Positions 4,093-48,435 of a stretch of DNA of 64,000 nucleotides are shown piece after piece. The translations under genes and the position numbers were made by a program. The stretch covers positions 124,001 to 188,000 of the forward strand of contig NIVC01002013.1 of NCBI GenBank assembly GCA_002269645.1, written 5' to 3'. Each line of letters opens with the position of its first letter. Positions within the stretch are counted from its first letter, which is position 1. Below the pieces are notes generated by a model. It saw only the letters and a list, made by a program, of their open reading frames with translations. It made no database searches and had not been told where the DNA came from. This stretch comes from Macrostomum lignano. Taxonomy: Eukaryota.

Positions 4093-4800
4093 CAACCTTC
4101 AAAACATACCGAGACAAACACATTTTCTGGCTATTGCGAAAAGTTAAAAAGCAAAAAGTTATGCATCAAATTTAATTGCAGATTCCAGCATGAGCCAGCA
4201 GGGCTTCCCCGGTTAACAGAAGCAAAGGCTCAGTTAAAATGTTTACAAGGTGCTACTGGCCTGGGCTGGGGCTAATCAGCGGATTTCTCTTTTATCGCTT
4301 CAAAGTCTTCCGTCTGTCTGTCTGAAATTTTAATCAAATCAGTTTTTGTACTTTTAATTTTGCTTGTGTCGTTGAAAATATCCTGGAATTAGTCTGGATA
4401 TGCTAAACCACTAAACGGGCTTCTACTAATTAACAGGTAACCAAAAAACGTCGAAAAATATTTTTTTATTACTTTTTTTCTATTTTTGCTTTTGCTTTAT
4501 TAACAATAGGAGTACCAAGCCATTTTTTTTCGCCCGTCGAAATACCAAGCGGAAATTTCCTAATTTGGACATCCTGTTACAACCATGTCAAACTTCAATA
4601 ACGAGCAAACCTCAACTGCTGGACATCCTCAGCTAGTCCATAGTCCCCTGGTGCCACCTGTTGAAGGTCCAGAAGCTCCGCCTGGGTGAAGGCCAGTGAC
4701 CAACCAAGTCAGAACTGATGCAGACACATGCGGTCGACTTGCTGATGATATTTGGAGGCTTTTTTTATTAGAGGCAGGGGGGTTGTGTGCACCCTGGCGC

Positions 4801-5120
4801 ACTTTAAGCGACATAGGCACACAACCAGCGAGAGGCATTACTGCCCATTCCGCCGACTCCCCTGAGCAGGCATACAAGCGCGCGGATACGTACGCAGGCA
4901 CACACTCACACAGGAGTGTACAGCGGCCCTAACTTTATTTTATCTTTAGGCATGTACACTTCACTGCGCCTTGGGGGTTGGCTCTCAAGGCCGTTAATTG
5001 CACGAGCAGAGCCAAGCCGAGATTCCAATTCAGCCCCAAATTAATGTGGCTGCACTTGTAATCGAGCCTGGGTCGCTGGCACACCAGAGCAGCTGCGCTA
5101 CCGCTGGGCTACGGCCCCCC
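4801..5120 (-). mobile_element. tRNA-derived SINE, family 1, copy A
   Basis: Near-identical copy at 22319-22656. The minus-strand head has an A box (CGTAGCCCAGCGG) and a B-like box (GGCTCGATTAC). Confidence 0.8.
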
Positions 5121-6009: not shown

Positions 6010-7392
6010 TTAGAAATAATCGTTACGATTTCCAGCTCTTCGTGCCACTGACCTCAGCGGACGCATCTCCGTGCTGTCTCCGCGGCCGCCGCCACCACCG
6101 CCAATCCCGCCAGTCCGCACCTCCTGTCGCTTCCTGTTGAGGCCTCCGCGACAGGCGCACCGCTTCACCTCGCGCTTGAAAGCTTCCGAGAAGACAAAGA
6201 AAATAAAAAAATTCGCTAAAGTGTCCAGCGTCACCAGAGCGTTGAGTCCGGAGAAGATGAGGCGCGCCTTGCCCGGACTGGAGCAGCGAAAGTGCGGGAA
6301 GAAGTGCATTAGAATGAAGTAGATGAATGTGGGCAGCTCCAGCACTGTGAAAGTGACGGCCAGAGCCAGCAGAATTCGGGTTGCCTTGCGTTTGCGACAG
6401 AGACCGCGACTGCGCGCGGGCTTGTGCGGCTGTCGCTGCTGCAGCTGCCGCTCGCGGTCGTGATGAATCACTGGGACAGCCAGGTTGTTGTGCGAGGATC
6501 CGATCGAATTGGAGCAATCAGCTGCTTCTACAGCTGGTTGCGCTCCTGTCGCGCGTGTTGACGGAGAGACCGTCGCCGAGGCGGCGTCGGAGGGCTCGCG
6601 GGCAGCCAGTAGGTGAGCGGCCAGGGCCACTGATAGCACTAGCACTGTGGGAACTGGCACTCCGGTCTGCATCACAAAGAAGAATATGATGAAGCTCTCA
6701 CACGATGAAGCTGCCTGCGCGGACGAATTCGAAACTGCAAACGGCGGTTGAGACGTGCTGGAAATCCCTGTCGCTGAATTGGCCTTCTCAGCGGCGGCGG
6801 CAGCTGCAGCAGCGGCGACTGCGTGCGCAGTGCAAGTTTTCTCCTCGAGGTGGCGAACGATGCTGAAGGCGGCGGAGCCGGTGAGAATGGCAAAGAACGC
6901 AACCAGCTGCCGCCGGCGGGTCAGCATCTCGGGCACGCGCAGCGGGAACAGGATCACCACAAAGCGGACAATTGTTAGAAAAGTGACCCACCAGTTTCTG
7001 AGCAGCAGGCTTGTGTTACTTATCACGAACTGAGCTTCCATGAAGTACTGCAGTATGCGGCCCCTGTCGCTGCCAGCTCCGCCCTCGCCCTGTCCAGCGG
7101 TGTCATTTCCAGCATGCGCAATCAGTTGCTCGATGTTGACAACGTGCAGCACAGTTAGCGACATGGCCGTGAACAGGCCCGTGACGATCAGCAGCACCAT
7201 GCCGCGGGCTCCGGCAGTTGCGTCCCGTCTGCGCAAGAAAATCCACAGGGTGAACACCAGGGACACCAGGGCCGCAACAGAGACGCACAGACTCAGCCCG
7301 TAGAAAGGCAACAGCAAAGCTCTGTACTGCGCCTCCTCCTCTGAATCCTCTTCGTCCGCAACCGGACTCAATGGGGGAGCTGGAGTACTCAT
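6010..7392 (-). CDS. Intronless class A (rhodopsin-like) orphan GPCR, peptide-receptor-like, 460 aa
   Basis: Seven hydrophobic segments. TM3 ends TIVRFVVILFP, TM6 reads ATRILLALAVTFTVLELP, and TM7/helix 8 reads NFFIFFVFSEAFKREV. Confidence 0.88.
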   Translation of the reverse strand: MSTPAPPLSPVADEEDSEEEAQYRALLLPFYGLSLCVSVAALVSLVFTLWIFLRRRDATAGARGMVLLIVTGLFTAMSLTVLHVVNIEQLIAHAGNDTAGQGEGGAGSDRGRILQYFMEAQFVISNTSLLLRNWWVTFLTIVRFVVILFPLRVPEMLTRRRQLVAFFAILTGSAAFSIVRHLEEKTCTAHAVAAAAAAAAAEKANSATGISSTSQPPFAVSNSSAQAASSCESFIIFFFVMQTGVPVPTVLVLSVALAAHLLAAREPSDAASATVSPSTRATGAQPAVEAADCSNSIGSSHNNLAVPVIHHDRERQLQQRQPHKPARSRGLCRKRKATRILLALAVTFTVLELPTFIYFILMHFFPHFRCSSPGKARLIFSGLNALVTLDTLANFFIFFVFSEAFKREVKRCACRGGLNRKRQEVRTGGIGGGGGGRGDSTEMRPLRSVARRAGNRNDYF

Positions 7393-16025: not shown

Positions 16026-17036
16026 CTAGAACTCGGTGTCCACCGTCTCAGGTCCTACTGTGGCGGCTGAAGCTGTTTTTAGCAGGCGCCCGCCGCAGGT
16101 GAGCACGCGGCGCATTCGAATTCGCAGTCTGCGCACGCCAGCTAAGTAGACTGGCGCGTTGGCGCACGAGTTGACGGTCACCAGGAAGCTGCTAGCGACC
16201 TGCAGCGGCGAGTTGAGCTCGTATTGAATGCCGGGCGCCAGCGAGCCGATGAGGTAGTAGAACGAATCCAGTGCGAATGTCGTCCCGAATAGCAATGTCG
16301 CCACCACGGCAGTTCTGGTGAGTTCCATGGCCGACCGACCGCTAGGCGTGGCCCTGACCGCGGCCACCACTCGAGCTTGCATAGTTGTCATGGCAACCAT
16401 CGGGCCAAGGTAGACGCCGATAAACCAGAGCAGCGAGTGGCCCATGAGCAGGCTGTCCATGGTGGCGGACCGGATGGCCGGCTCGCCGGGCCTGCAGGCG
16501 CCGATGTCGAAGTCGTAGCGGACGTAGAAAGCGGTGGGCAGGGCGAAGACCACGGCGGCCAGGTAGATGGCGACCATCTGGCCGGCCAGGCCGCAGCGGG
16601 CCGCCGCCCTGGATCGGTAGCTGATGGGCCTGACCACCGCGGAGAATCTCTCCCAGTTGATAAGCAGCAGGTTGCCAACTCCCACAGCCACAATGGCCCA
16701 ATAGACGGTCTGCGTGTGCCACAGGTAGCACAGGGCCGGGCCGCCCTGGTCAAGCAGGTCGGGCAGCCAGCCGGGCGAGTACAGCAGGCAGAGGAGGCAC
16801 ACGATCGAGTCGACGCCGAACTGGTGCGCTAGCAGACGGCCAGCCACCCGATTTGAAGCTCCGCCGAAGCGACCGCCGCCCGGCAGCAGTGTGGCGGCCA
16901 GGCAGAGCCAGTTCAAAGCCAGACCAACGGCTATGAGCAGAGCTCGACAGGCCAACAGAAAGGTTTCTACTGGACTGGAAGCAACAGCTTGCTGGCTGTT
17001 GACCGTTTCGTTCGTCGCATTGTCTCGAAGCTCCAT
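16026..17036 (-). CDS. Intronless class A orphan GPCR, 336 aa
   Basis: N-terminal N-glycosylation sequons and 7 TM segments. ERFSAVVRP (DRY equivalent), YLGP in TM5, NSCANAPVY (NPxxY equivalent). Confidence 0.9.
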   Translation of the reverse strand: MELRDNATNETVNSQQAVASSPVETFLLACRALLIAVGLALNWLCLAATLLPGGGRFGGASNRVAGRLLAHQFGVDSIVCLLCLLYSPGWLPDLLDQGGPALCYLWHTQTVYWAIVAVGVGNLLLINWERFSAVVRPISYRSRAAARCGLAGQMVAIYLAAVVFALPTAFYVRYDFDIGACRPGEPAIRSATMDSLLMGHSLLWFIGVYLGPMVAMTTMQARVVAAVRATPSGRSAMELTRTAVVATLLFGTTFALDSFYYLIGSLAPGIQYELNSPLQVASSFLVTVNSCANAPVYLAGVRRLRIRMRRVLTCGGRLLKTASAATVGPETVDTEF

Positions 17037-27867: not shown

Positions 27868-28476
27868 GGACCTTATTTATCTAGGTCTTTGCGCTGCTTT
27901 TGCTAGAGTCAAGTTTCCTAATTTTCCTCGAGAAGGACAGTACACATGGCTCTCAACAAAGCAGGGAAGAGGGAAAACTGACCCTGTTGCCATAGCGTTG
28001 GGATCTGGGATGCTGCAGCGAGATTGGGATGCATTTTCATTCGAAGAATAGCTATAGGTACAACCTGTATCTTCCCTCGGATAGTCTATTGGAGAGCAGA
28101 TCTTTGAGTGGGGGGGGACAAAATGTCACGTGAGAGCTCACCTCACGCGAATCGCTTGGGGGCAAATCCCCTATGCCAGGGCTCGAGCACTTGAGTTGGG
28201 GATTCCTGTTTTGTAGGATAGAAATTTGCTCGCCCCCTCTCGATTCTACTGATGAGGCCAACGATTGCGTTGGAAAGGGCCACCCAGGGACTTGAGGCGG
28301 GGCTCATATGCTCATATTAAGTACATGAGCATTGGCGAACTAAGACATTTTTGATTTTCTGCGTGAAACAAACTTGAAGTGCTTCTCGGATATTCATCAA
28401 CTACAGAGCTGGCTTGCAGCCTTAAAGCCAGAAAAGGCATTGCCTTGCTAGAATAACTATCTAGAAACATCCCATA

Positions 28477-29650
28477 GTGACAGAGTGACATGGTGACAGA
28501 GTGACATGGTGACAAAGTGACATGGTGACAGAGTGACATGGTGACAGAGTGACATGGTGACAGAGTGACATGGTGACAGAGTGACATGGTGACAGAGTGA
28601 CATGGTGACAGAGTGACATGGTGACAGAGTGACATGGTGACAGAGTGACATGGTGACAGAGTGACATGGTGACAGAGTGACATGGTGACAGAGTGACATG
28701 GTGACAGAGTGACATGGTGACAGAGTGACATGGTGACAGAGTGACATGGTGACAGAGTGACATGGTGACAGAGTGACATGGTGACAGAGTGACATGGTGA
28801 CAGAGTGACATGGTGACAGAGTGACATGGTGACAGAGTGACATGGTGACAGAGTGACATGGTGACAGAGTGACATGGTGACAGAGTGACATGGTGACAGA
28901 GTGACATGGTGACAGAGTGACATGGTGACAGAGTGACATGGTGACAGAGTGACATGGTGACAGAGTGACATGGTGACAGAGTGACATGGTGACAGAGTGA
29001 CATGGTGACAGAGTGACATGGTGACAGAGTGACATGGTGACAGAGTGACATGGTGACAGAGTGACATGGTGACAGAGTGACATGGTGACAGAGTGACATG
29101 GTGACAGAGTGACATGGTGACAGAGTGACATGGTGACAGAGTGACATGGTGACAGAGTGACATGGTGACAGAGTGACATGGTGACAGAGTGACATGGTGA
29201 CATGGTGACAGAGTGACATGGTGACAGAGTGACATGGTGACAGAGTGACATGGTGACAGAGTGACATGGTGACAGAGTGACATGGTGACAGAGTGACATG
29301 GTGACAGAGTGACATGGTGACAGAGTGACATGGTGACAGAGTGACATGGTGACAGAGTGACATGGTGACAGAGTGACATGGTGACAGAGTGACATGGTGA
29401 CAGAGTGATATGGTGACAGAGTGACATGGTGACAGAGTGACATGGTGACAGGGTGACATGGTGACAGAGTGACATGGTGACAGAGTGACATGGTGACAGA
29501 GTGACATGGTGACAGAGTGACATGGTAACAGAGTGATATTGTGACAGAGTGATATGGTGACAGAGTAACAACGGACAGAGTGACGGTGGACAGAGTGACA
29601 TGGTGACAGAGTGACAATGGACAGAGTGACGGTGGGCAGAGTGACATGGA
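28477..29650. repeat. 16-bp minisatellite (GTGACAGAGTGACATG)n, a dimer of two 8-mers
   Basis: Near-perfect tandem repeat of about 1.2 kb. Confidence 0.97.
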
Positions 29651-32435
29651 GACATGCGCATTCTAATGTAAGACGCCTGTGAAATTTGAAATTTTTAGGG
29701 AATAAAGGGAATAATGAGAAAGAATATTTTAACCAAACTATTAAGTCCACTCGTGCATGCCCTCAATGCAGGTGACGCTACTTAAATACGAAAATACGCA
29801 AAATACTAATAAATATTAATCTGAACGTGTGTCTAGATCTCCAGACCTTAAGGGAATATGCACTACCTGGAATAGTGCATTATTCAATTATTCTTTTTGG
29901 CTTGTATATTATAGATAATACGAGTATATAGTATAGCTACTCGTATTTATGGTTCGTATATTCATAAGTCCGCGGGCCCAGCCCAGTTGCTAGGGTTCAC
30001 CCAAGCGGAGCAGGGCTAGAAGGATTCCCTCCACCATGCAGCCTCAGGCGCATGCCTGACTGACTGCATGACGTGGCGTGAGGCCCGCCAATATAAAAGT
30101 GGGGCATTGAAAATCGCCACAATGCCAAATATTTTTTTAGAATAAGCCGCTGAGAAGCATCTTTGTGAGTCTGGGTCACGTTATCTACATCTTTGATGCG
30201 GAAATCTGTTGGAACTTTTAAAGAAAGTAAAGCTATTGTGTCGCGAGCTATTGTTGATAAAGGTAGTATTATCGCATCGTTCACTGTGCTCACTCAGTGT
30301 GATTCACTACATAGAGAGTGACTCATTCAGCGTGATTCACTATATGTAAGACTCTGTGTGAGACTCAGTTAGTGTGATTTTTCGTGTGTGATCCATCAGA
30401 GTGACTCATCGTGTGTGTGGTTCACTCGGTGTGTGTTTATTAGGATGCAATCTACTCACTCACTCATTCACTCATAGTGTGACTCTCACTCAGCAAGATT
30501 GCAGCCCGGACAGCATCCCACGGCTCATCCAGTTCCTTCGGGTGACAAGACGAGCCATTGTCTTCCCCACGGAAGATCACGCTGCAGGACGGACCGGCGG
30601 ACCACCCTGACCGGCCCCCATGCCTCTGCCTGTCTGCTGGCCTTCAGGGGCCGGCGGAATGGGCGACCCTCGCCTCCCCGCTGTGTCTACCGACCACCCT
30701 GCAGCTGAGTCAAGTAAGTCAGCAAGATTGACTGTGCGTGGCTCACTTAAGAAGCGCAACTTATTCTTTGTCAAATTGAGTTGCCCCTGGCCCTGTTTCA
30801 CTCAATGTGACTCACAGAGAATGGTTAGTGAATTGATAAACGTCACGTGATTGCCATACTTCAGACCAGAAGTTCATTATAATGCCTCCAGAAATTCAGG
30901 AAGCTCCCTGTGTTCCTTTCTCTTATTTTCTTCTGGCAGGCACAGCAGACATGAGGGAAAACTGCCTGCAGGCTATGTGGACAAGAAATGAAAATTTGTT
31001 GGCAATCAGAGATTGGCCCCCGAGGGGAAATGGCTCTCTGCTATCGCTAATGAGGCTGCAGCAGACTTTAGCATCTCAATTTTTCAAGCTAGTATGAATT
31101 CATCATTCAATATTCTGTATTATTTCTACAATAGTTTGATAACAAATACAGTTTACCAAATCTTTGTAGAATTCTCCGGTAGGCTAATCTCTATAAACTT
31201 ACAGAAGCCGATCAAACAAGGTTTGTCAATCTTCAGCCTTTACTCTACGGAAATTCAAACTCAAAGGCAAACCGCCTCACACTCGAAAGCTCACTACAAA
31301 CGATTTTAGGCCCATAATTGAGTGTAAAAGAATTAAACTAATAGACAATTATAGATAACTGACCTCAGTTCACGCAGTCTCTCCCTTCACAAAGCACTCA
31401 GATCGATGAATATATTATGAAAGCCAAAAAAGAAAGCTCATTGACCTAAAAAGAAAAACGAGGGAAGCGAAACAGGCTATGATTCTAGAGATATGTATTT
31501 TGAGCAGAAGTGCAACTTCGATCGTTCTGCGATGAAGATCTTTATCGGTACCAACTGTTACACATACTTGCAGTCTTCGGATGAGAATATACGATCGATA
31601 TTGACGTATTTTGTTTATCATCAGGCTATTAAAGCATTACCACCTGTGTACAGGTACATCTCTAGCCATGTAAAATGGCTTGAGCTATAAGTGCTGCATG
31701 GAGCCAAATGCACTTATATCCAACATCTATGCATGCATTGCAAAGATCGAAACAGCCAAGCTTTTATAGACACACGTCACACAATATTGCGTGTAGTTGC
31801 AGAACCTCACTCAAAACTGCAGTACAGCAAGTTATTCTACATCCTTTTAGTTCCCTTTACCCAGACTCTCGGCCCATTAGCAGCAGCTGTGGCGCTGAAC
31901 TCATCTTTTAACCGGACTCACGCGATTACGATCAATAAAAGGTAAACAGAAATTATGCTTCCTGCACGCGATGGTTATATTAAGTGATGGGTACAGATGC
32001 ATATATATGACGTACACTAATATCATCCACTTTAATTTAACTCCGCGTGTATATATTTCTTAATTAATTTTCCCAACTCGCTCATTCTAAACACAATTAA
32101 TTGACATGTACTTAAAAAAACTACTTACAGAACTCATGTATTGTAATTATTATTAATTTGTAAATCATGCTTCTGGCCTATATATACTCGTAAGGTCAAA
32201 GCTGCACATGTTTGTAAAGTTATATTATACTTCGATAACTTATAGGTGTAAGCATATAGCACGACTCCCGCCTCTCTACAAGAATGTTACGAGTACAAAC
32301 CAAAGGATCACTGCACTAGGGCATACATAATTACATTAATAGATCATCCATTACGTACTTGCCCTCATCCAGTGTAAAAGTGCGCTGTTGCTGTCACTTC
32401 AGGAGAGGACAATCACACATACATGTAAGTATAAG

Positions 32436-38879: not shown

Positions 38880-39350
38880 ATGTTGGCAATTTCCAGTCGT
38901 CAAGGCCAACTAATTGGCCGATTTTTGTCTAGAAATGCGACAACTGCTCGCCACCTAGCTAGCGTGCCTAGTGCCAGTTTCAATGGCACCAATGGAAGCA
39001 GTCAGAGTCGAGGTCCTCAATGGGCTTCGAAAGTGGCACTTGTTAGCGGTGGATTCTTAGCTGGCTGCTGTCTGACAGTCTGGCAGTTGAGACGTCAGCG
39101 CAGCTTCAGCGAGGCTGCAGGCAGTGGCGTGGCTTTGGCTGCCAGCGCTAACAGGCCGACCCCGCCAACTAGCGTCAACCACATCGCCGATCTGGTGGAG
39201 CTGGTGTCTCCCACGGCAGTTAACATCCGGGTAGAGGGCAGCACGGCGCTGCACTCAATGCTTGGCATGCCCAGCTCGCAGGGCTCCGGGTTTATTATAC
39301 GCGAGGATGGCCTTATTTTAACTAATGCTCACGTGGCTGGAAGGTTTAAG
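38880..39350 (+). CDS. HTRA2: HtrA2/Omi mitochondrial serine protease, exon 1
   Basis: Arg/Ser/Ala-rich presequence, a TM segment, then QGSGFIIREDGLILTNAHV (catalytic His). GTGAGA donor. Confidence 0.92.
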
Positions 39351-39435
39351 GTGAGAACGGAGTAACCTGCTGTTGCTTGTTGGTTGGTTACCTGTGAATC
39401 TGTTATTCAAAGTCTAGGTGAAATCTCTGTGTATG

Positions 39436-40560
39436 GGACACTATTGGCGCCATCTCTGACACTATTGACGCCATATTTGACACTATTGGCGCCATCTCTG
39501 ACACTATCGACGCCATATTTGATACTATTGGCGCCATCTCTGACACTATTGGCGCCATCTCTGACACTATTAACGCCATATCTGACACTATTGGTGCCAT
39601 CTCTGACACATTATTGGCGCCATCTCTGACATTATTGGCGCCATCTCTGACACTATTGACGCCATCTTTGACACAATATTGGCGCTATCTCTGACACACT
39701 ATTGGCGCCATCTTCGACACACTACCAGCGCCAACTTTGACACACTACTGGCACCATCTCTGAGATAATTGGCACCAACTCTAACACACTATTGGCGCCA
39801 TCTCTGGCACACTATTGGCGCCATCTCTGACACGCTATCGACGCCATCTCTAATACACTGTCGGCGCCGCTATCTTTGACACACTATTGACGCCATCTCT
39901 GACAAACTATCGGCGCCATCTTTAACATAATCAGAGCAGTCTCTGAGACATAATCCGCGCCATCTCTGATACACTTTTGGTGCCATCTTCGACACACTAC
40001 TGGCGCCTTCTTTGACACACTACCGGCGCCAACTCTGAGGTAATCGGCGCTATCTCTAACACACTATTGGTGCCATCTCTGGCACACTATTGGCGCCATC
40101 TCTGACACTATTGGCGCCATCTCTGATACTATTGGCGCCATCTCTGACACTATTGGTGCCATCTCTGACACTATTGGCGCCATATCTGACACTATTGGTG
40201 CCATCTCTGACACATTATTGTTAGCATATCTGACACTATTAACGCCATCTTTGACACACTATTGGCGCCATCTTCGACACACTACTGGTGCCTTCTTTGA
40301 CACACTACTGGCGCCATCTCTGAGATAATCGGCGCCATCTCTAACACACTATTGGCGCCATCTCTGGCACACTATTGGCGCCATATCTGACACGCTTTCG
40401 GCGCCATCTCTAATACACTATCGGCGCCGCTATCTTTGACACACTATTGGCGCCATCTCTGACAAACTGTCGGCGCCATCTTTAAGATAATCGGAGCAAT
40501 CTCTGACACGCGATTGGCGTCATCTCTGAGACAATCAGCGCCACTTTTATCTAATATATC
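39436..40560. repeat. About 21-bp degenerate intronic minisatellite (ACACTATTGGCGCCATCTCTG)
   Basis: Tandem units with larger duplicated blocks. Confidence 0.9.
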
Positions 40561-40659
40561 GGTGATAATATCGGCGCTATTTTCTATCTTTCCAGATCTA
40601 GTACAGAAAGTCTAGTAGTGTTACTATAAAAAAGTACTTTATTACCATTATCAACGCAG

Positions 40660-40983
40660 GGCAGCCTGGTTGTCACCCTAACAGACGGTCGCGAGCTGCC
40701 CGCAGAGCTGATAGCCATAGACGCTGAGAGCGACATGGCTCTAGTGAAGGTGTCGGCTCGCGACCTTCCCGTGCTACCGTTGGGCCAGTCGAAGCGCTGC
40801 CGAGCTGGCGAATGGGTCATCGCGATTGGCTCTCCGCTGACCCTCAGCAACACGGTCACGGTTGGTATTCTCAGCAATACAGCCAGAAATTTGGGCACCG
40901 GTAGCAATATTGAGTATCTGCAAACTGATGCCGCCATCACGTTTGGCAATTCTGGCGGGCCATTGGTGGATATGCATGGCCAG
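40660..40983 (+). CDS. HTRA2: HTRA2 exon 2
   Basis: DAESDMALVK (Asp), GEWVIAIGSP, YLQTDAAITFGNSGGPL (Ser). Phase 0 at both ends. Confidence 0.95.
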
Positions 40984-41016
40984 GTGAGCCCGGTATTTTT
41001 ATTATTGCCTGTTTAA

Positions 41017-41910
41017 CACCTGTTAGACAGAAGCTATACCTGTTAGACATAAGCTATACTTGTTAGACAGAAGCTATACCTGTTAGACATAAGCTATACT
41101 TGTTAGACAGAAGCTATACCTGTTAGACATAAGCTATACTTGTTAGACAGAAGCTATACCTGTTAGACAGAAGCTATACTTGTTAGACATAAGCTATACC
41201 TGTTAGATAGAAGCTATACCTGTTAGACAGAAGCTATACTTGTTAGACAGAAGCTATACTTGTTAGACAGAAGCTATACATGTTAGATAGAAGCTATACC
41301 TGTTAGACAGAAGCTATACTTGTTAGACAGAAGCTATACATGTTAGACAGAAGCTATACTTGTTAGACAGAAGCTATACATGTTAGACAGGAGCTATACA
41401 TGTTAGACAGAAGCTATACTTGTTAGACAGAAGCCTCACCTGTTAGACAGAAGCTATACTTGTTAGACAGAAGCCTCACCTGTTAGACAGAAGCTATACT
41501 TGTTAGACAGAAGCCTCACCTGTTAGACAGAAGCCTCACCTGTTAGACAGAAGCCTTTTCTGCTAGGCAGAAGCCTCACCTGTTAGACGGAAGCTTTACC
41601 TGTTAGACAGGAGCCTCACCTGTTAGACGGTAACTTTACCTGTTAGACAGGAACCTCCCCTGTTAGACAGAAGCCTCACCTGTTAGGCAGAAGCCTCACC
41701 TGTTAGACAGAAGCCTTATCTGCTAGGCAGAAGCCTCACCTGTTAGACAGAAGCCTCACCTGTTAGACGGAAGCCTCACCTGTTAGACGGAAGCTTTACC
41801 TGTTAGACAGGAACCTCACCTGTTAGACAAACCCTCAACTGTTAGACAAAACCCTCAACTGTTAGACGGAAGCTTTATCTATAAGACAGAAGCCTCACCT
41901 GTTAGACACA
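41017..41910. repeat. 20-bp intronic minisatellite (ACCTGTTAGACAGAAGCTAT drifting to ...AAGCCTC)
   Basis: Direct tandem repeat. Confidence 0.93.
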
Positions 41911-41933
41911 ATTTCCGCGCACTTTTACTGCAG

Positions 41934-42371
41934 GCGATCGGCATCAACACGCTGAAAGCGGACGCTGGCATCAGCTTCGCCATTCCCATCGACGAGGCGA
42001 AGAATTTCGTAGACCAGGCCCTGTCCACCTCTCGCCAAGTGATCAGCCGGCCAAAGGCCTACCTGGGCCTCACGCTGCTGTCGCTCAACCCCACCATCGC
42101 CAGGCGGGTCTTCGGTCGCGATGGCATTGACAAAGGCGTCCTGGTGCACTCGGTTCACCCGGACTCGCCAGCTCAGCGGGCCGGCCTGGCCAGTTATGAC
42201 GTCATTCTGACTGCGGACGGCGAGCCGGTTCGTCGGGTGTCCGATCTGCACCGCGCTGTTGCCAAGGCAACGCAAAGAGGCGGTGGTAAATCTGTGACTG
42301 TTCGATTGCTGGTGCTGCGGTCTGGGCGCGAGCTTCAGCTGGATGTGCAGCCAGAACTGCAGGGCGGATGA
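41934..42371 (+). CDS. HTRA2: HTRA2 exon 3 with PDZ domain
   Basis: AIGINTLKADAGISFAIP...YLGLTLLSL...GVLVHSVHPDSPAQRAGL..DVI. Confidence 0.95.
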   Translation, partial: AIGINTLKADAGISFAIPIDEAKNFVDQALSTSRQVISRPKAYLGLTLLSLNPTIARRVFGRDGIDKGVLVHSVHPDSPAQRAGLASYDVILTADGEPVRRVSDLHRAVAKATQRGGGKSVTVRLLVLRSGRELQLDVQPELQGG

Positions 42372-42856
42372 GTGGCTGGTGACTATGGCCAGGTTTAAAG
42401 CCATTGAGGAAATATTGAGTATCAGCTTCTGCCTGTCTTTACTGTGTCTTTGTGCCTGTGTGTCTGCCTGTGTGTCTGCCTGTCTGTCTGCTCTGTCTGT
42501 CTGCTCTGTCTGTTAGTTTTCCTGCTGCAAATCTTTCAGAAGCTAAAGGATGCGAAAGAAGAGCTAGACAGGCTTATCCTGCGATTTAGTGTGTTAATAT
42601 GGCTAGTAGACCTGCCGTCTTTGATGCTTAGTTGAATAAAATGCAAGTATTGACTCCCAGCATCGCCTATTATTAGTTAATAAATAATTGTAATTAATTT
42701 TTTGCGCTCATAGTTTAATGTGTAGATATAATAAAAAGTTACTTGCTTAGAGACCGTGAGAGACACTGCATATTTCTAATGTCTTCGTTTGAAATTTCAA
42801 TTTCATTAAATAGTTCATACTTTTAGTAGTCAATGCAAATCAGGGACTTATTAGCA

Positions 42857-44148
42857 AATCCCAGATCCTCATAATTCAGCTATTCAAATCCCAGATCCTC
42901 ATAATTCAGCCATTCAAATCCCAGATTCTCATAATTCAGCCATTCAAATCCCAGATCCTCATAATTCAGCTATTCAAATCCCAGATCCCCATAATTCAGC
43001 TATTCAAATCCCAGATCCTCATAATTCAGCCATTCAAATCCCAGATCCTCATAATTCAGCTATTGAAATCCCAGACCCTCATAATTTAGCTATTCAAATC
43101 CCAGATATTCATAATTCAGCTATTCAAATCCCAGATCCTCATAATTCAGCTATTGAAATCCCAGACCCTCATAATTTAGCTATTCAAATCCCAGATATTC
43201 ATAATTTAGCTATTCAAATCCCAGATCCTCATAATTCAGCTATTTAAATCCCAGATATTCATAATTTAGCTATTCAAATCCCAGATTCTCATAATTCAGC
43301 TATTTAAATCCCAGATCCTCATAATTTAGCTATTCAAATCCCAGATCCCCATAATTCAGCTATTCAAATCCCAGATCCCCATAATTCAACTATTCAAATC
43401 CCAGATCCCCATAATTCAGCTATTTAAATCCCAGATTCTCATAATTCAGCTATTCAAATCCCAGATCCCCATAATTCAGCTATTTAAATCCCAGATTCTC
43501 ATAATTCAGCTATTCAAATCCCAGATCCTCATAATTCAACTATTCAAATCCCAGATCCCCATAATTCAACTATTCAAATCCCAGATCCCCATAATTCAGC
43601 TATTCAAATCCCAGATCCCCATAATTCAGCTATTCGAATCCCAGATCCCCATAATTCAGCTATTCAAATCCCAGATCGCCATAATTCAGCTATTCAAATC
43701 CCAGATCGCCATAATTCAGCTATTCAAATCCCAGATCCCCATAATTCAGCTATTCAAATCCCAGATCCTCATAATTCAGCTATTGAAATCCCAGATCCTC
43801 ATAATTTAGCTATTCAAATCCCAGATCCTCATAATTTAGCTATTCAAATCCCAGATTCTCATAATTCAGCTATTCAAATCCCAGATCCTCATAATTCAGC
43901 TATTCAAATCCCAGATCCTCATAATTTAGCTATTCAAATCCCAGATCCTCATAATTTAGCTATTCAAATCCCAGATTCTCATAATTCAGCTATTCAAATC
44001 CCAGATCCTCATAATTCAGCTATTCAAATCCCAGATCCCCATAATTCAGCTATTTACGCTCGTAAGTCCCAGATCCTCATAACTCAGCTATTCAAATCCC
44101 AGATCCCACAATTCAGCCATTCAAATCCCAGATCCTCATAATTCAGCT
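42857..44148. repeat. 30-bp minisatellite between HTRA2 and MESD
   Basis: Unit TCAGCTATTCAAATCCCAGATCCTCATAAT, ending about 25 nt before the MESD acceptor. Confidence 0.96.
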
Positions 44149-44171
44149 GAACTCCCAATTCCCCTTTCCAG

Positions 44172-44732
44172 GCGACTGCAGCTGTCCGGTCTCTGCTGCT
44201 CCTGTGCCTGCTGCTCCCAGCCAGCAGCTCGGCCGAGCAGAAGAAGCCGCTGTCCGAGTACTCTGACGCAGACTTGGAGCGACTCTACAAGCAGTGGGAA
44301 GAAAGCGATCCGGACTCGGAGCCCGAGAGCACGAGCTGGAAGAGTCCACAGTTGGATCTGACCAAGGTGCCGGATTTGACAGATCCCACACTAATCCTGC
44401 AGCACTCCAGCCGTGGCCAGCCGGTGCCTCTGATTGTCCGCATCGCTGGAGCCGAGGGTCGCGACTCCGTATGGCTGGAGAATCTGTCGCGCAACTGGCA
44501 GCTGGAGATGTTCAACGCTCACATGGAGACAACTAGGCGAGTTGTAGAAGACGGCACGGTGCAACTGATCGCTCTTGATGGCTCTCAGGTGGTGAAAGTG
44601 CGCGAATATTTGCTAGCCCAGCCTAACTGTTATTCTGTCACTATCGAGGGTCACACTGTACTCGGTAGGGGCGCTCCAGCTGCTGAAGTGGCCGCTGCCG
44701 CCGCTGCTAAAGCCAAAAATACTGAACTATGA
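44172..44732 (+). CDS. MESD: MESD/boca LDL-receptor-family ER chaperone; starts at a splice acceptor with no ATG
   Basis: Signal-like LLLLCLLLP, EYSDADLERLYKQWEE, W..EMFNA, DGS....V.EYL..Q..C..VTIEG and C-terminal NTEL. In-frame TGA at 44148. AATAAA at 44801. Confidence 0.9.
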   Translation, partial: ATAAVRSLLLLCLLLPASSSAEQKKPLSEYSDADLERLYKQWEESDPDSEPESTSWKSPQLDLTKVPDLTDPTLILQHSSRGQPVPLIVRIAGAEGRDSVWLENLSRNWQLEMFNAHMETTRRVVEDGTVQLIALDGSQVVKVREYLLAQPNCYSVTIEGHTVLGRGAPAAEVAAAAAAKAKNTEL

Positions 44733-44949
44733 ACAGTAGTATAGTAGTGTTAACTTTGTATTTTTTTAAAAATGATTTCAACTTATTTTGTTATGTACAC
44801 AATAAATTGTCTGCTTCAATCAATGTTTTAAATTACATGTAAATTCATTGTGCGATAACATTTTTTTGTGTGATTTCCTTGTTCAAACTTTATAATATAG
44901 TAAATGTTTTTTTCAACAATATAAAGTACATTCAGGTCTGTCCCCTCCT

Positions 44950-45135
44950 AAATGTACATTTACACCTCTACCCCCTTCAGGGCGTACATTCACAGCTCTA
45001 CCCCCCAGAATGTACATTTACACCTCTACCCCCAGAGTGTACATTTACAGCTCTACCCTCCAGAGTGTACATTTACAGCTCTACCCTCTCCCAGAGTGTA
45101 CATTCACAGCTCTACCCTCCAGTGTATCCAGTGTA
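44950..45135. repeat. About 27-bp short tandem array (GTGTACATTTACAGCTCTACCCTCC)
   Basis: About 6 degenerate units. Confidence 0.8.
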
Positions 45136-46934: not shown

Positions 46935-48008
46935 TTGACTATGGCGTCTGTAATCGACTCGGCTCTGAATCCTCCATTAATTGATTTTCGCTATGCTACG
47001 GTGTCTGGATTAATTGGCGACGAAATGTTTATTGAAAGTGTGTCCAGCAACTTTGAGAGGACGGGCGACGATTTGACTCCACTGATAGCGGATTGCACGT
47101 TCAGCGAGGAATTAGAGAAACTTTTCAGCTCGGATCCGGAAACCTTGTGTAACCTTGACGAATTGGAAAGTCTGGCCGCTCAACTGGAACGCGACAACGA
47201 ATGTCATTCGACTGTCTCTAAGGATAAAGCTGTGATCAACCGCTTGACGGCCTGGTTGGCGGAGAATAATTTAAAAGTGGATTACGCGACTGCTTCGGTG
47301 GAAGAAATTGCCAAATGGGTCCGCTACTTCTATGCGACTCTGCGTAAGTCAGACGGCAGCTTCTATTCGCCGAATACAATCGTAGGAATTCGAGCCGCAC
47401 TGTTCAGGTACTTTATGAAATTACCTGACCTCAATATCATCGCTCACGAGGCTTTTCATAGCGCGAATTTGATGGTGAAGAATGTTTGCAATGCGTATTT
47501 GAAGTCCGGTGGTCGAGTGCAGCATTACGAAGCCATTGAGTCGGACGACCTTTTCAAGCTTGCTTCTTACTTCGACAGAAGCACTCCAACACGTTTGCAA
47601 GAAGAGGTATATTTCAATGTGTTATTTTATTTCGGCAATCGCGGCAGAGAATGGCTACGAGGTCTCACTGTTCGTTCATTCCGAGAGAAGGCCCCATCAA
47701 ACGGAGCTATGGCGATCGAGTTGCAAGGCAGCACCTCAAAGCTTTATTTGTCGAAAATTACTGCCGTGCCGGGTTGGAATCAGGAGGACTTCTTTCTGCG
47801 TCCGAAACCACGAGTGAATGCGGATGGCATCTGGTACACCAAAGTACCAGTTGGAATCAACACTTTGGGGCCGTTGCTCAAGAAGATCTCTTCGAATGCT
47901 AACCTGTCCAAGCTGTACACTCCGCATTGTGTGCGACCTACAGTTGTTACGGAGCTGCATGAAGCTGGCTTTTCTGTCGAAAAAATTGCGAAGGTGACAG
48001 GTCACAAG
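46935..48008 (+). CDS. Crypton tyrosine recombinase (DUF3504/KCTD1-ZMYM-related), exon 1; start uncertain
   Basis: LRKSDG..YS..T....RAAL.RY, FGNRGRE (Arg), WYTKVPVGINTL, YTPHCVRPT (H-x-x-R), VTGHK (His). Confidence 0.9.
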
Positions 48009-48084
48009 GTGAGCAATTCTTTATTCTTAGTAAGTTTATTGACACATGGACAAGGAATTTATTAAACACCACCTCTATTCACAG

Positions 48085-48435
48085 AATAGCGCGTCGGTAG
48101 AACGATACATCCGGAGAGGCAAGAAGAGGGACTCGATCATGGCAGGGATGAGTGATCAGCTGACAGTCGCTCTAGCTGGAACTATGCCGGCACCAAGTTC
48201 TACATTGAGCGAAGCTCCTGCAAGGGCTGTTACAACTACCGACCCGTGCGCCCTGAGCGACGCTCCTACAAGGGCTGTTGCGACTACCGACCCGTGCGGA
48301 TCAGCGTCAATGTCAACTGTCAAGAAGTCACTGGTTGTTGAAGAATCGACCACCACACTTTTAGCAGCCCCCACTAAGCGGATGAAGATTTTGGCAAACG
48401 GCAAAACGAATGTTGTGCAGTTTATTTTCGAGTAA
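48085..48435 (+). CDS. Crypton recombinase exon 2 with the catalytic Tyr
   Basis: 76-bp GT-AG intron (48009-48084), phase 0, giving TGHK|NSASVERYI. Confidence 0.85.
   Translation, partial: NSASVERYIRRGKKRDSIMAGMSDQLTVALAGTMPAPSSTLSEAPARAVTTTDPCALSDAPTRAVATTDPCGSASMSTVKKSLVVEESTTTLLAAPTKRMKILANGKTNVVQFIFE

Follow-up and report, generated by a model that had tools for sequence, protein, structure and literature searches.

The spliced leader probably supplies the start codon of the MESD gene in the flatworm Macrostomum lignano

In flatworms, initiation of translation at an AUG located at the 3′ end of the spliced leader (SL) is a conserved feature (PMC12582326; PMC7653826; PMC5832876). For Schistosoma mansoni, Cheng et al. 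2006, as cited in PMC9851317, found that 28% of trans-spliced mRNAs have the SL AUG in frame and that more than 40 cDNAs depend on it. In Macrostomum, Wiberg et al. treated the ATG of the SL as a start codon and hence left the SL on their reads (PMC10468722). M. lignano has a single 35-nt SL, CGGTCTCTTACTGCGAAGACTCAATTTATTGCATG, which ends in ...TTGCATG (PMC8629364); 30 to 39% of its genes are trans-spliced (PMC8629364; PMC5730564), and the motif [T/C]TNCAG (written YTNCAG below) is enriched at its trans-splice acceptors (PMC8629364). Here we analyze a 64-kb stretch of M. lignano DNA, referred to as the window, which carries on its plus strand (44172-44732) the gene for MESD/Boca, a chaperone of the endoplasmic reticulum (ER). 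The coding sequence (CDS) is a single exon of 186 codons plus a TGA stop (44730-44732), and it lacks a genomic start codon. We propose that this codon is most likely supplied by the AUG at the 3′ end of the SL.

Two described systems resemble this locus. In the first, that of Cheng, Cohen, Ndegwa & Davis (J Biol Chem 2006), the elements are those that we propose for MESD, namely, an SL ending in AUG, a phase-0 acceptor, an open reading frame (ORF) without a start of its own, and an SL AUG acting as codon 1. Unlike in the S. mansoni system, the host here is a free-living macrostomorph, the recipient is MESD, and the AUG would complete an ER signal peptide; moreover, in contrast to Cheng et al. 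2006, we infer both trans-splicing and initiation from the genome. The second system comprises the slORFs found with slORFfinder (PMC9851317), in which the leader likewise donates the start codon and gene prediction from the genome alone overlooks or shortens the ORF. Yet slORFs were defined in nematodes, ascidians, and euglenozoa, on the basis of SL-containing RNA-seq together with ribosome footprints, and often start at a non-AUG codon, whereas MESD would use a canonical AUG and is a conserved housekeeping ORF. A preliminary description of the locus had proposed the SL as the source of the MESD start codon. SL-AUG initiation has been known since 2006 and was noted for Macrostomum (PMC10468722). 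MESD would be one more case of the known flatworm SL-AUG initiation, not a new mechanism.

The protein encoded by this ATG-less exon is orthologous to the ER chaperone MESD/Boca. Its sequence begins with ATAAVRSLLLLCLLLPASSSAEQKKPLSEYSDADLERLYKQWEE, ends with AKAKNTEL, and matches the Mesd domain PF10185 at residues 24-170 (Pfam, E = 5.5e-26), scoring 91.8 bits where the cut-off is 24.4, over profile positions 1-147 of 155. Mouse MESD (PDB 2KGL) matches it with an E value of 8.3e-19. A HMMER scan of 1.84 billion representatives yielded 98 MESD clusters, and the identity between the window MESD and its closest homologues outside Macrostomum ranges from 31 to 38%. With the MESD/Boca family (PF10185; mouse 2KGL and 2KMI; Drosophila Boca 3OFF), the M. 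lignano protein shares the Mesd domain, the conserved DADLERLYKQWEE helix, which would follow a predicted signal peptide, and an xxEL end; it differs in having a single exon, no genomic ATG, and, in the window copy, NTEL in place of KTEL. This C-terminal tetrapeptide, of the ER-retrieval type, is encoded at 44718-44729 (plus strand) and is KTEL in both M. lignano paralogues. Most full-length MESD homologues have an xxEL C-terminus, and in several of them it is KTEL.

The MESD frame is closed on its upstream side. The in-frame stop that the preliminary description had placed at 44148 is a TGA (44148-44150, plus strand), and an in-frame TAA (44139-44141) precedes it; the TAA and the TGA lie 10 and 7 codons, respectively, before the acceptor considered below. 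From 44172 the frame opens in phase 0, reading ATAAVRSLLLLCLLLPASSSA and then EQKK. There is no in-frame ATG from the upstream stop to residue 113. The first one is codon 113 itself (44508), within the Mesd domain, in agreement with the initial claim that no Met comes before the conserved domain. Either the exon once possessed a genomic initiator codon that was later lost, or none ever existed. It is the complete absence of a usable start, in a conserved ER protein under purifying selection, that gives the evidence for an external start its weight.

The N-terminal sequence itself points in the same direction. According to hydropathy and a -3/-1 scan, the putative signal-peptide coding part spans 44172-44234 on the plus strand. 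It would comprise an n-region with one Arg, (M)ATAAVR; an h-region, SLLLLCLLLP, with a 10-residue Leu/Cys-rich core and a hydropathy of up to 3.1 in a 9-residue window; and a c-region, ASSSA, with S and A at positions -3 and -1. Cleavage is predicted by the -3/-1 scan between SSA and E, before EQKK. The three regions are complete only with a Met from outside the genomic exon, and adding one gives a predicted canonical signal peptide, as had been proposed. In 75 Met-starting homologues, the conserved Trp of the QWE motif has a median position of 48. The M. lignano Trp falls at 43 after one residue is added, which is its position in the closest homologue outside Macrostomum (P0009) and in 5 other full-length homologues. 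As judged from the sequence, the MESD N-terminus is complete except for Met.

Within the signal-peptide coding region, at 44187-44194, we also observed the octamer CGGTCTCT, which equals SL nucleotides 1-8. The window contains 4 copies of it where about 1 would be expected, and its match to the start of the SL is probably due to chance.

The strong acceptor previously assigned to 44171 was confirmed: a polypyrimidine tract and acceptor, TTCCCCTTTCCAG, occupy 44159-44171 on the plus strand and are followed by GCG. We propose this as the SL trans-splice site. The tract ACTCCCAATTCCCCTTTCCAG ends at 44171, downstream of the in-frame stops; the acceptor fits YTNCAG in phase 0, and the preceding 14 nt (44152-44165) are 86% pyrimidine. 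YTNCAG occurs three times between MESD and the stop of the upstream gene, which encodes an HtrA-like protease: at 42539, in the HtrA 3′ untranslated region (UTR), at 44171, and at 44181. Past the HtrA poly(A) signals, the site at 44171 comes first, and its pyrimidine tract is the best. The phase of this acceptor, taken alone, is weak evidence, as phase 0 has 1 chance in 3. The preliminary description had noted that flatworm leaders end in AUG, and the SL of M. lignano does so (PMC8629364). No SL RNA gene was found within the 64-kb window. A similar arrangement is seen in P0009, which is encoded by a single exon on a Logan DRR639838 contig (L004) and has 35% identity to MESD. At positions 350-372 of that contig, ttttattttgcag is followed by AACATC and ATG; that is, a YTNCAG acceptor in phase 0 lies two codons before the gene's own ATG. 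An AUG-terminal SL at this acceptor would be in frame.

The mechanism that we propose would begin with transcription of the HtrA-like protease gene and the downstream, same-strand MESD as one precursor, the spacer of which would consist mostly of a 1.3-kb tandem repeat. The 35-nt SL would then be trans-spliced to the acceptor at 44171/44172, so that the junction would read TTATTGCATG and then GCGACTGCAGCTGTCCGG. The AUG-terminal SL and the phase-0 acceptor would together give an mRNA reading ...UUGC-AUG-GCG-ACU-.... Translation starting at the SL AUG would produce M-ATAAVRSLLLLCLLLPASSSA, a cleavable signal peptide, followed after the cleavage site by EQKK, the Mesd domain, and the C-terminal NTEL. 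We infer both the joining of the SL at 44172 and ribosome initiation on the SL AUG from the genome. The initial claim that MESD takes its start codon from the SL is supported.

MESD has two close paralogues in this species. The window segment 28883-52371 is 100% identical to a 23.5-kb locus of NIVC01002013.1 (Mlig_3_7, GCA_002269645.1), and its MESD has no CDS called in the GenBank record. The protein collection, of 5.8 billion clusters, contains no NTEL form; the only close relatives of the window MESD in it are PAA60838.1 (BOX15_Mlig011032g2) and PAA56096.1 (BOX15_Mlig032997g2), both from M. lignano, both with 99% identity, and both partial. The paralogue CDSs, at loci L001 and L002, are annotated from Leu9 and Leu8 of the genomic frame onward, respectively. 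Thus, the expectation that gene predictors would truncate MESD is borne out, with two 5′-partial models and one copy without a CDS. The three copies differ at 9 codons, 7 of them with synonymous and 2 with nonsynonymous changes (binomial estimate, p ~0.003, assuming that ~72% of random substitutions are nonsynonymous). This pattern argues for a MESD frame that is translated and under purifying selection. In the 3′ UTR, the window copy has AATAAA at 44801-44806, where both paralogues have AATGAA.

A different origin of the ATG would be a cis-spliced upstream exon, for which the acceptor at 44171 could serve as an ordinary strong 3′ splice site. Such an exon would have to lie either in the spacer or in HtrA. 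The 1.8 kb between the HtrA stop (42371) and the acceptor contain 8 ATGs, none of them within the tandem repeat. All six phase-compatible candidates that run from an ATG to a GT have donors matching 2 or fewer of 6 consensus positions, the M. lignano donor consensus being GT[G/A]AG (PMC8629364); as for the GTRAG donors, the spacer has two (42756 and 44062), and a reading of the sequence shows that neither can be connected in frame to an ATG without crossing a stop. One of the candidates, the micro-exon ATGCAA followed by GTATTG at 42641-42646 (plus strand), had been named as a possible refutation of the SL start. The sequence is present, but it abuts the HtrA AATAAA at 42635-42640, and its donor agrees with the consensus at 2 of 6 positions; we therefore rejected it. 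An in-frame HtrA-MESD fusion is formally possible, given that HtrA exons 1 and 2 end in phase 0 (39350/39351 and 40983/40984), and the two genes are annotated in one transcriptional unit at the paralogous loci. However, the transcript-based annotation splits the two genes, g1 and g2, without a joined model, and a fusion would place the MESD signal peptide behind 157 to 265 protease residues bearing their own N-terminal targeting region. We found no evidence for HtrA-MESD read-through cis-splicing. Against a cis exon of either kind, the MESD N-terminus equals those of homologues in length once a single residue is added. Overall, we regard a cis-spliced ATG as very unlikely.

Initiation within the MESD exon at a non-AUG codon, with or without trans-splicing, appears still less probable. 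In its favor, 5 of the first 14 MESD codons are in-frame CTGs, which would offer a CUG start at 44193-44211, and non-AUG starts have been described for taxa with SLs (PMC9851317). Yet these codons lie in poor contexts (G, T, or C at -3; C or T at +4), and a start at a CUG would drop the Arg of the n-region and some of the h-region. In an mRNA carrying the SL, moreover, the CUGs would be preceded by an in-frame AUG. The ATG-less copies might also be untranslated relics, that is, pseudogenes, or the ATG may have been lost by misassembly, as MESD abuts a hard-to-assemble repeat of 1.3 kb. M. lignano has many duplicated gene copies, and the window copy is without a CDS call. This scenario would nevertheless have to account for an identical junction in three separately assembled loci, one of them with a long terminal repeat (LTR) retrotransposon replacing everything beyond -80, for an intact MESD ORF in all three copies, and, in the case of a pseudogene, for 7 synonymous versus 2 nonsynonymous differences. 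In addition, no other M. lignano MESD cluster is found among the 5.8 billion clusters or the 1.84 billion representatives; therefore, these copies must provide the function. We consider it extremely improbable that they are relics or assembly errors.

Several observations weigh against a start codon donated by the SL at 44172. A second YTNCAG, CTGCAG at 44176-44181 on the plus strand, lies 10 nt downstream of the first acceptor, in phase 1. Joined at 44182, where the junction would read SL and then CTGTCCGGTCTCTGC, the SL would carry its AUG out of frame, opening an ORF of 60 codons (SL Met plus 59) that ends at a stop. In exact look-ups, the M-extended MESD proteins are absent from the collection of 5.8 billion protein clusters. 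Neither Mlig011032, Mlig032997, and Mlig008974 nor MESD is mentioned in the searched supplement text of published papers. The partial MESD CDSs in GenBank begin 21 and 24 nt past the acceptor (+22 and +25), so their annotated 5′ ends are not visibly the exact SL cut. The label “partial” is itself unspecific: the HtrA CDS is also “partial” despite a genomic ATG 1 to 2 codons upstream. The window copy has no CDS call, and its expression may be lower or absent. Finally, no difference separates the three MESD copies between -80 and +159, and their comparison is therefore no independent test of the acceptor. A full-text literature search returned no paper with these MESD or HtrA gene identifiers.

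The 5′ ends of the partial MESD models are more simply explained by assembled transcripts that were truncated in the ordinary way; the HtrA models are cut short likewise. The “partial” label mainly reflects 5′-truncated transcript models. Transcript models in the M. lignano annotation have 5′ ends short by a few to ~25 nt. Because the CDS at L001 starts directly after CGGTCTCT, we considered an SL-trimming artefact; this was set aside, as the start of the CDS lies 3 nt further upstream in the other copy.

The setting of MESD resembles that of operon genes. In the M. lignano annotation, the suffixes “.g1/.g2” mark genes cut from one transcriptional unit by SL and poly(A) signals (PMC5730564, Suppl. 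Fig. 5a), and in the two paralogous loci HtrA is g1 and MESD is g2 of one unit. Operons of this species have been called from the intergenic distance minus repeats, with a 1-kb threshold and a mode near 100 bp (Ustyantsev & Berezikov 2021). The HtrA-MESD spacer measures ~1.5 kb, including a 1.29-kb repeat; the distance from the HtrA poly(A) signals (42635-42805) to 44171, minus 1294 bp, amounts to ~50 to 240 bp. The pair, which lies on the same strand, is thus within the repeat-adjusted operon distance of less than 1 kb. Like the M. lignano operons (Wudarski et al. 2017; Ustyantsev & Berezikov 2021), HtrA-MESD is annotated as a same-strand g1/g2 unit in both paralogous loci, with a repeat-adjusted gap well below 1 kb and a YTNCAG acceptor at the downstream gene. 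It departs from them in its raw gap of ~1.5 kb, which results from the 43-copy repeat, and in a further ~4.5 kb in one paralogue, owing to the LTR retrotransposon.

The repeat that fills the spacer (outron or intercistronic region) is a 30-bp tandem repeat at 42855-44148, with the unit CAAATCCCAGATCCTCATAATTCAGCTATT in ~43 copies. Neither an ATG nor a YTNCAG motif occurs within its 1294 bp. Its copy number varies among the homeologous loci, from ~43 units in the window to clearly fewer in L001 (~4100-4950). In L002, it is found at 1-399 and 4900-4979, split by the retrotransposon. This element (L002 400-4899), oriented like the genes, is a Ty3/gypsy LTR retrotransposon that appears to be intact, with LTRs of ~140 bp and a 1095-aa ORF of the order PR-RT-RNaseH-IN, and its 3′ LTR ends 80 bp before the MESD acceptor. 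The L002 pair is still annotated as g1/g2 despite a spacer that is ~4.5 kb larger.

The upstream gene, BOX15_Mlig008974g1, lies at 38880-42371 on the plus strand and encodes an HtrA-like serine protease with a PDZ domain, 410 aa long by exon reconstruction. Its three exons (38880-39350, 40660-40983, and 41934-42371) all end in phase 0, and the called gene has Pfam Trypsin and PDZ matches. A homology search with the C-terminal exon gave no match; the 408-aa protein of a paralogue was therefore rebuilt and looked up exactly. It equals PAA60837.1 (Mlig011032g1), and Mlig032997g1 and Mlig008974g1 belong to the same cluster. HtrA has its own genomic ATG at 38880. An HtrA start taken from the SL AUG was also considered and rejected, since, in addition to this ATG, the AG found just upstream in the window is absent in the paralogue. 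The GenBank HtrA CDSs are “partial,” starting from Leu2 or Ala3, despite the ATG directly upstream, as seen in ATGTTGGCA (window 38880-38888; L001 1010-1018). In the 3′ UTR, the first AATAAA is at 42635-42640 (plus strand), with more AATAAA/ATTAAA signals at 42679, 42730, and 42805. The introns are largely tandem repeats: intron 1 contains a 23-bp unit in ~49 copies (39438-40543) and intron 2 a 20-bp unit in ~45 copies (41018-41908).

Downstream of MESD, a 28-bp tandem repeat occupies 44943-45122, in or after the MESD 3′ UTR, and a DUF3504/tyrosine-recombinase (Crypton-like) ORF lies at 46935-48435 on the plus strand. Other ORFs in the window, at 6010-7392, 16026-17036, and 28312-29661 (minus strand), comprise two for rhodopsin-type G-protein-coupled receptors, on the minus strand, and low-complexity Pro-rich repeat ORFs.

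A more far-reaching scenario, which we regard as speculative and on the whole unlikely, is that all homeologous M. lignano MESD copies have irreversibly given up their start codon to the SL. ER import of this chaperone of LRP5/6-class receptors, and hence the maturation of Wnt co-receptors, would then be obligatorily coupled to trans-splicing. Use of either the in-frame acceptor at 44171 or the out-of-frame one at 44181, 10 nt away, could act as a posttranscriptional on/off switch. The closest homologue, with its own ATG two codons past a phase-0 acceptor, may in such a scenario represent a redundant intermediate that preceded the loss of the ATG.

A start codon donated by the SL would explain why MESD, a conserved and presumably essential gene, has 5′-partial CDSs or none in the M. 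lignano annotation. Other flatworm gene models could be repaired with the help of the underlying pattern, an ATG-less ORF that opens at a YTNCAG acceptor in phase 0. Transgenesis in M. lignano renders the case experimentally tractable. If true, MESD would be a clean case of a protein targeting signal that is completed only by trans-splicing.

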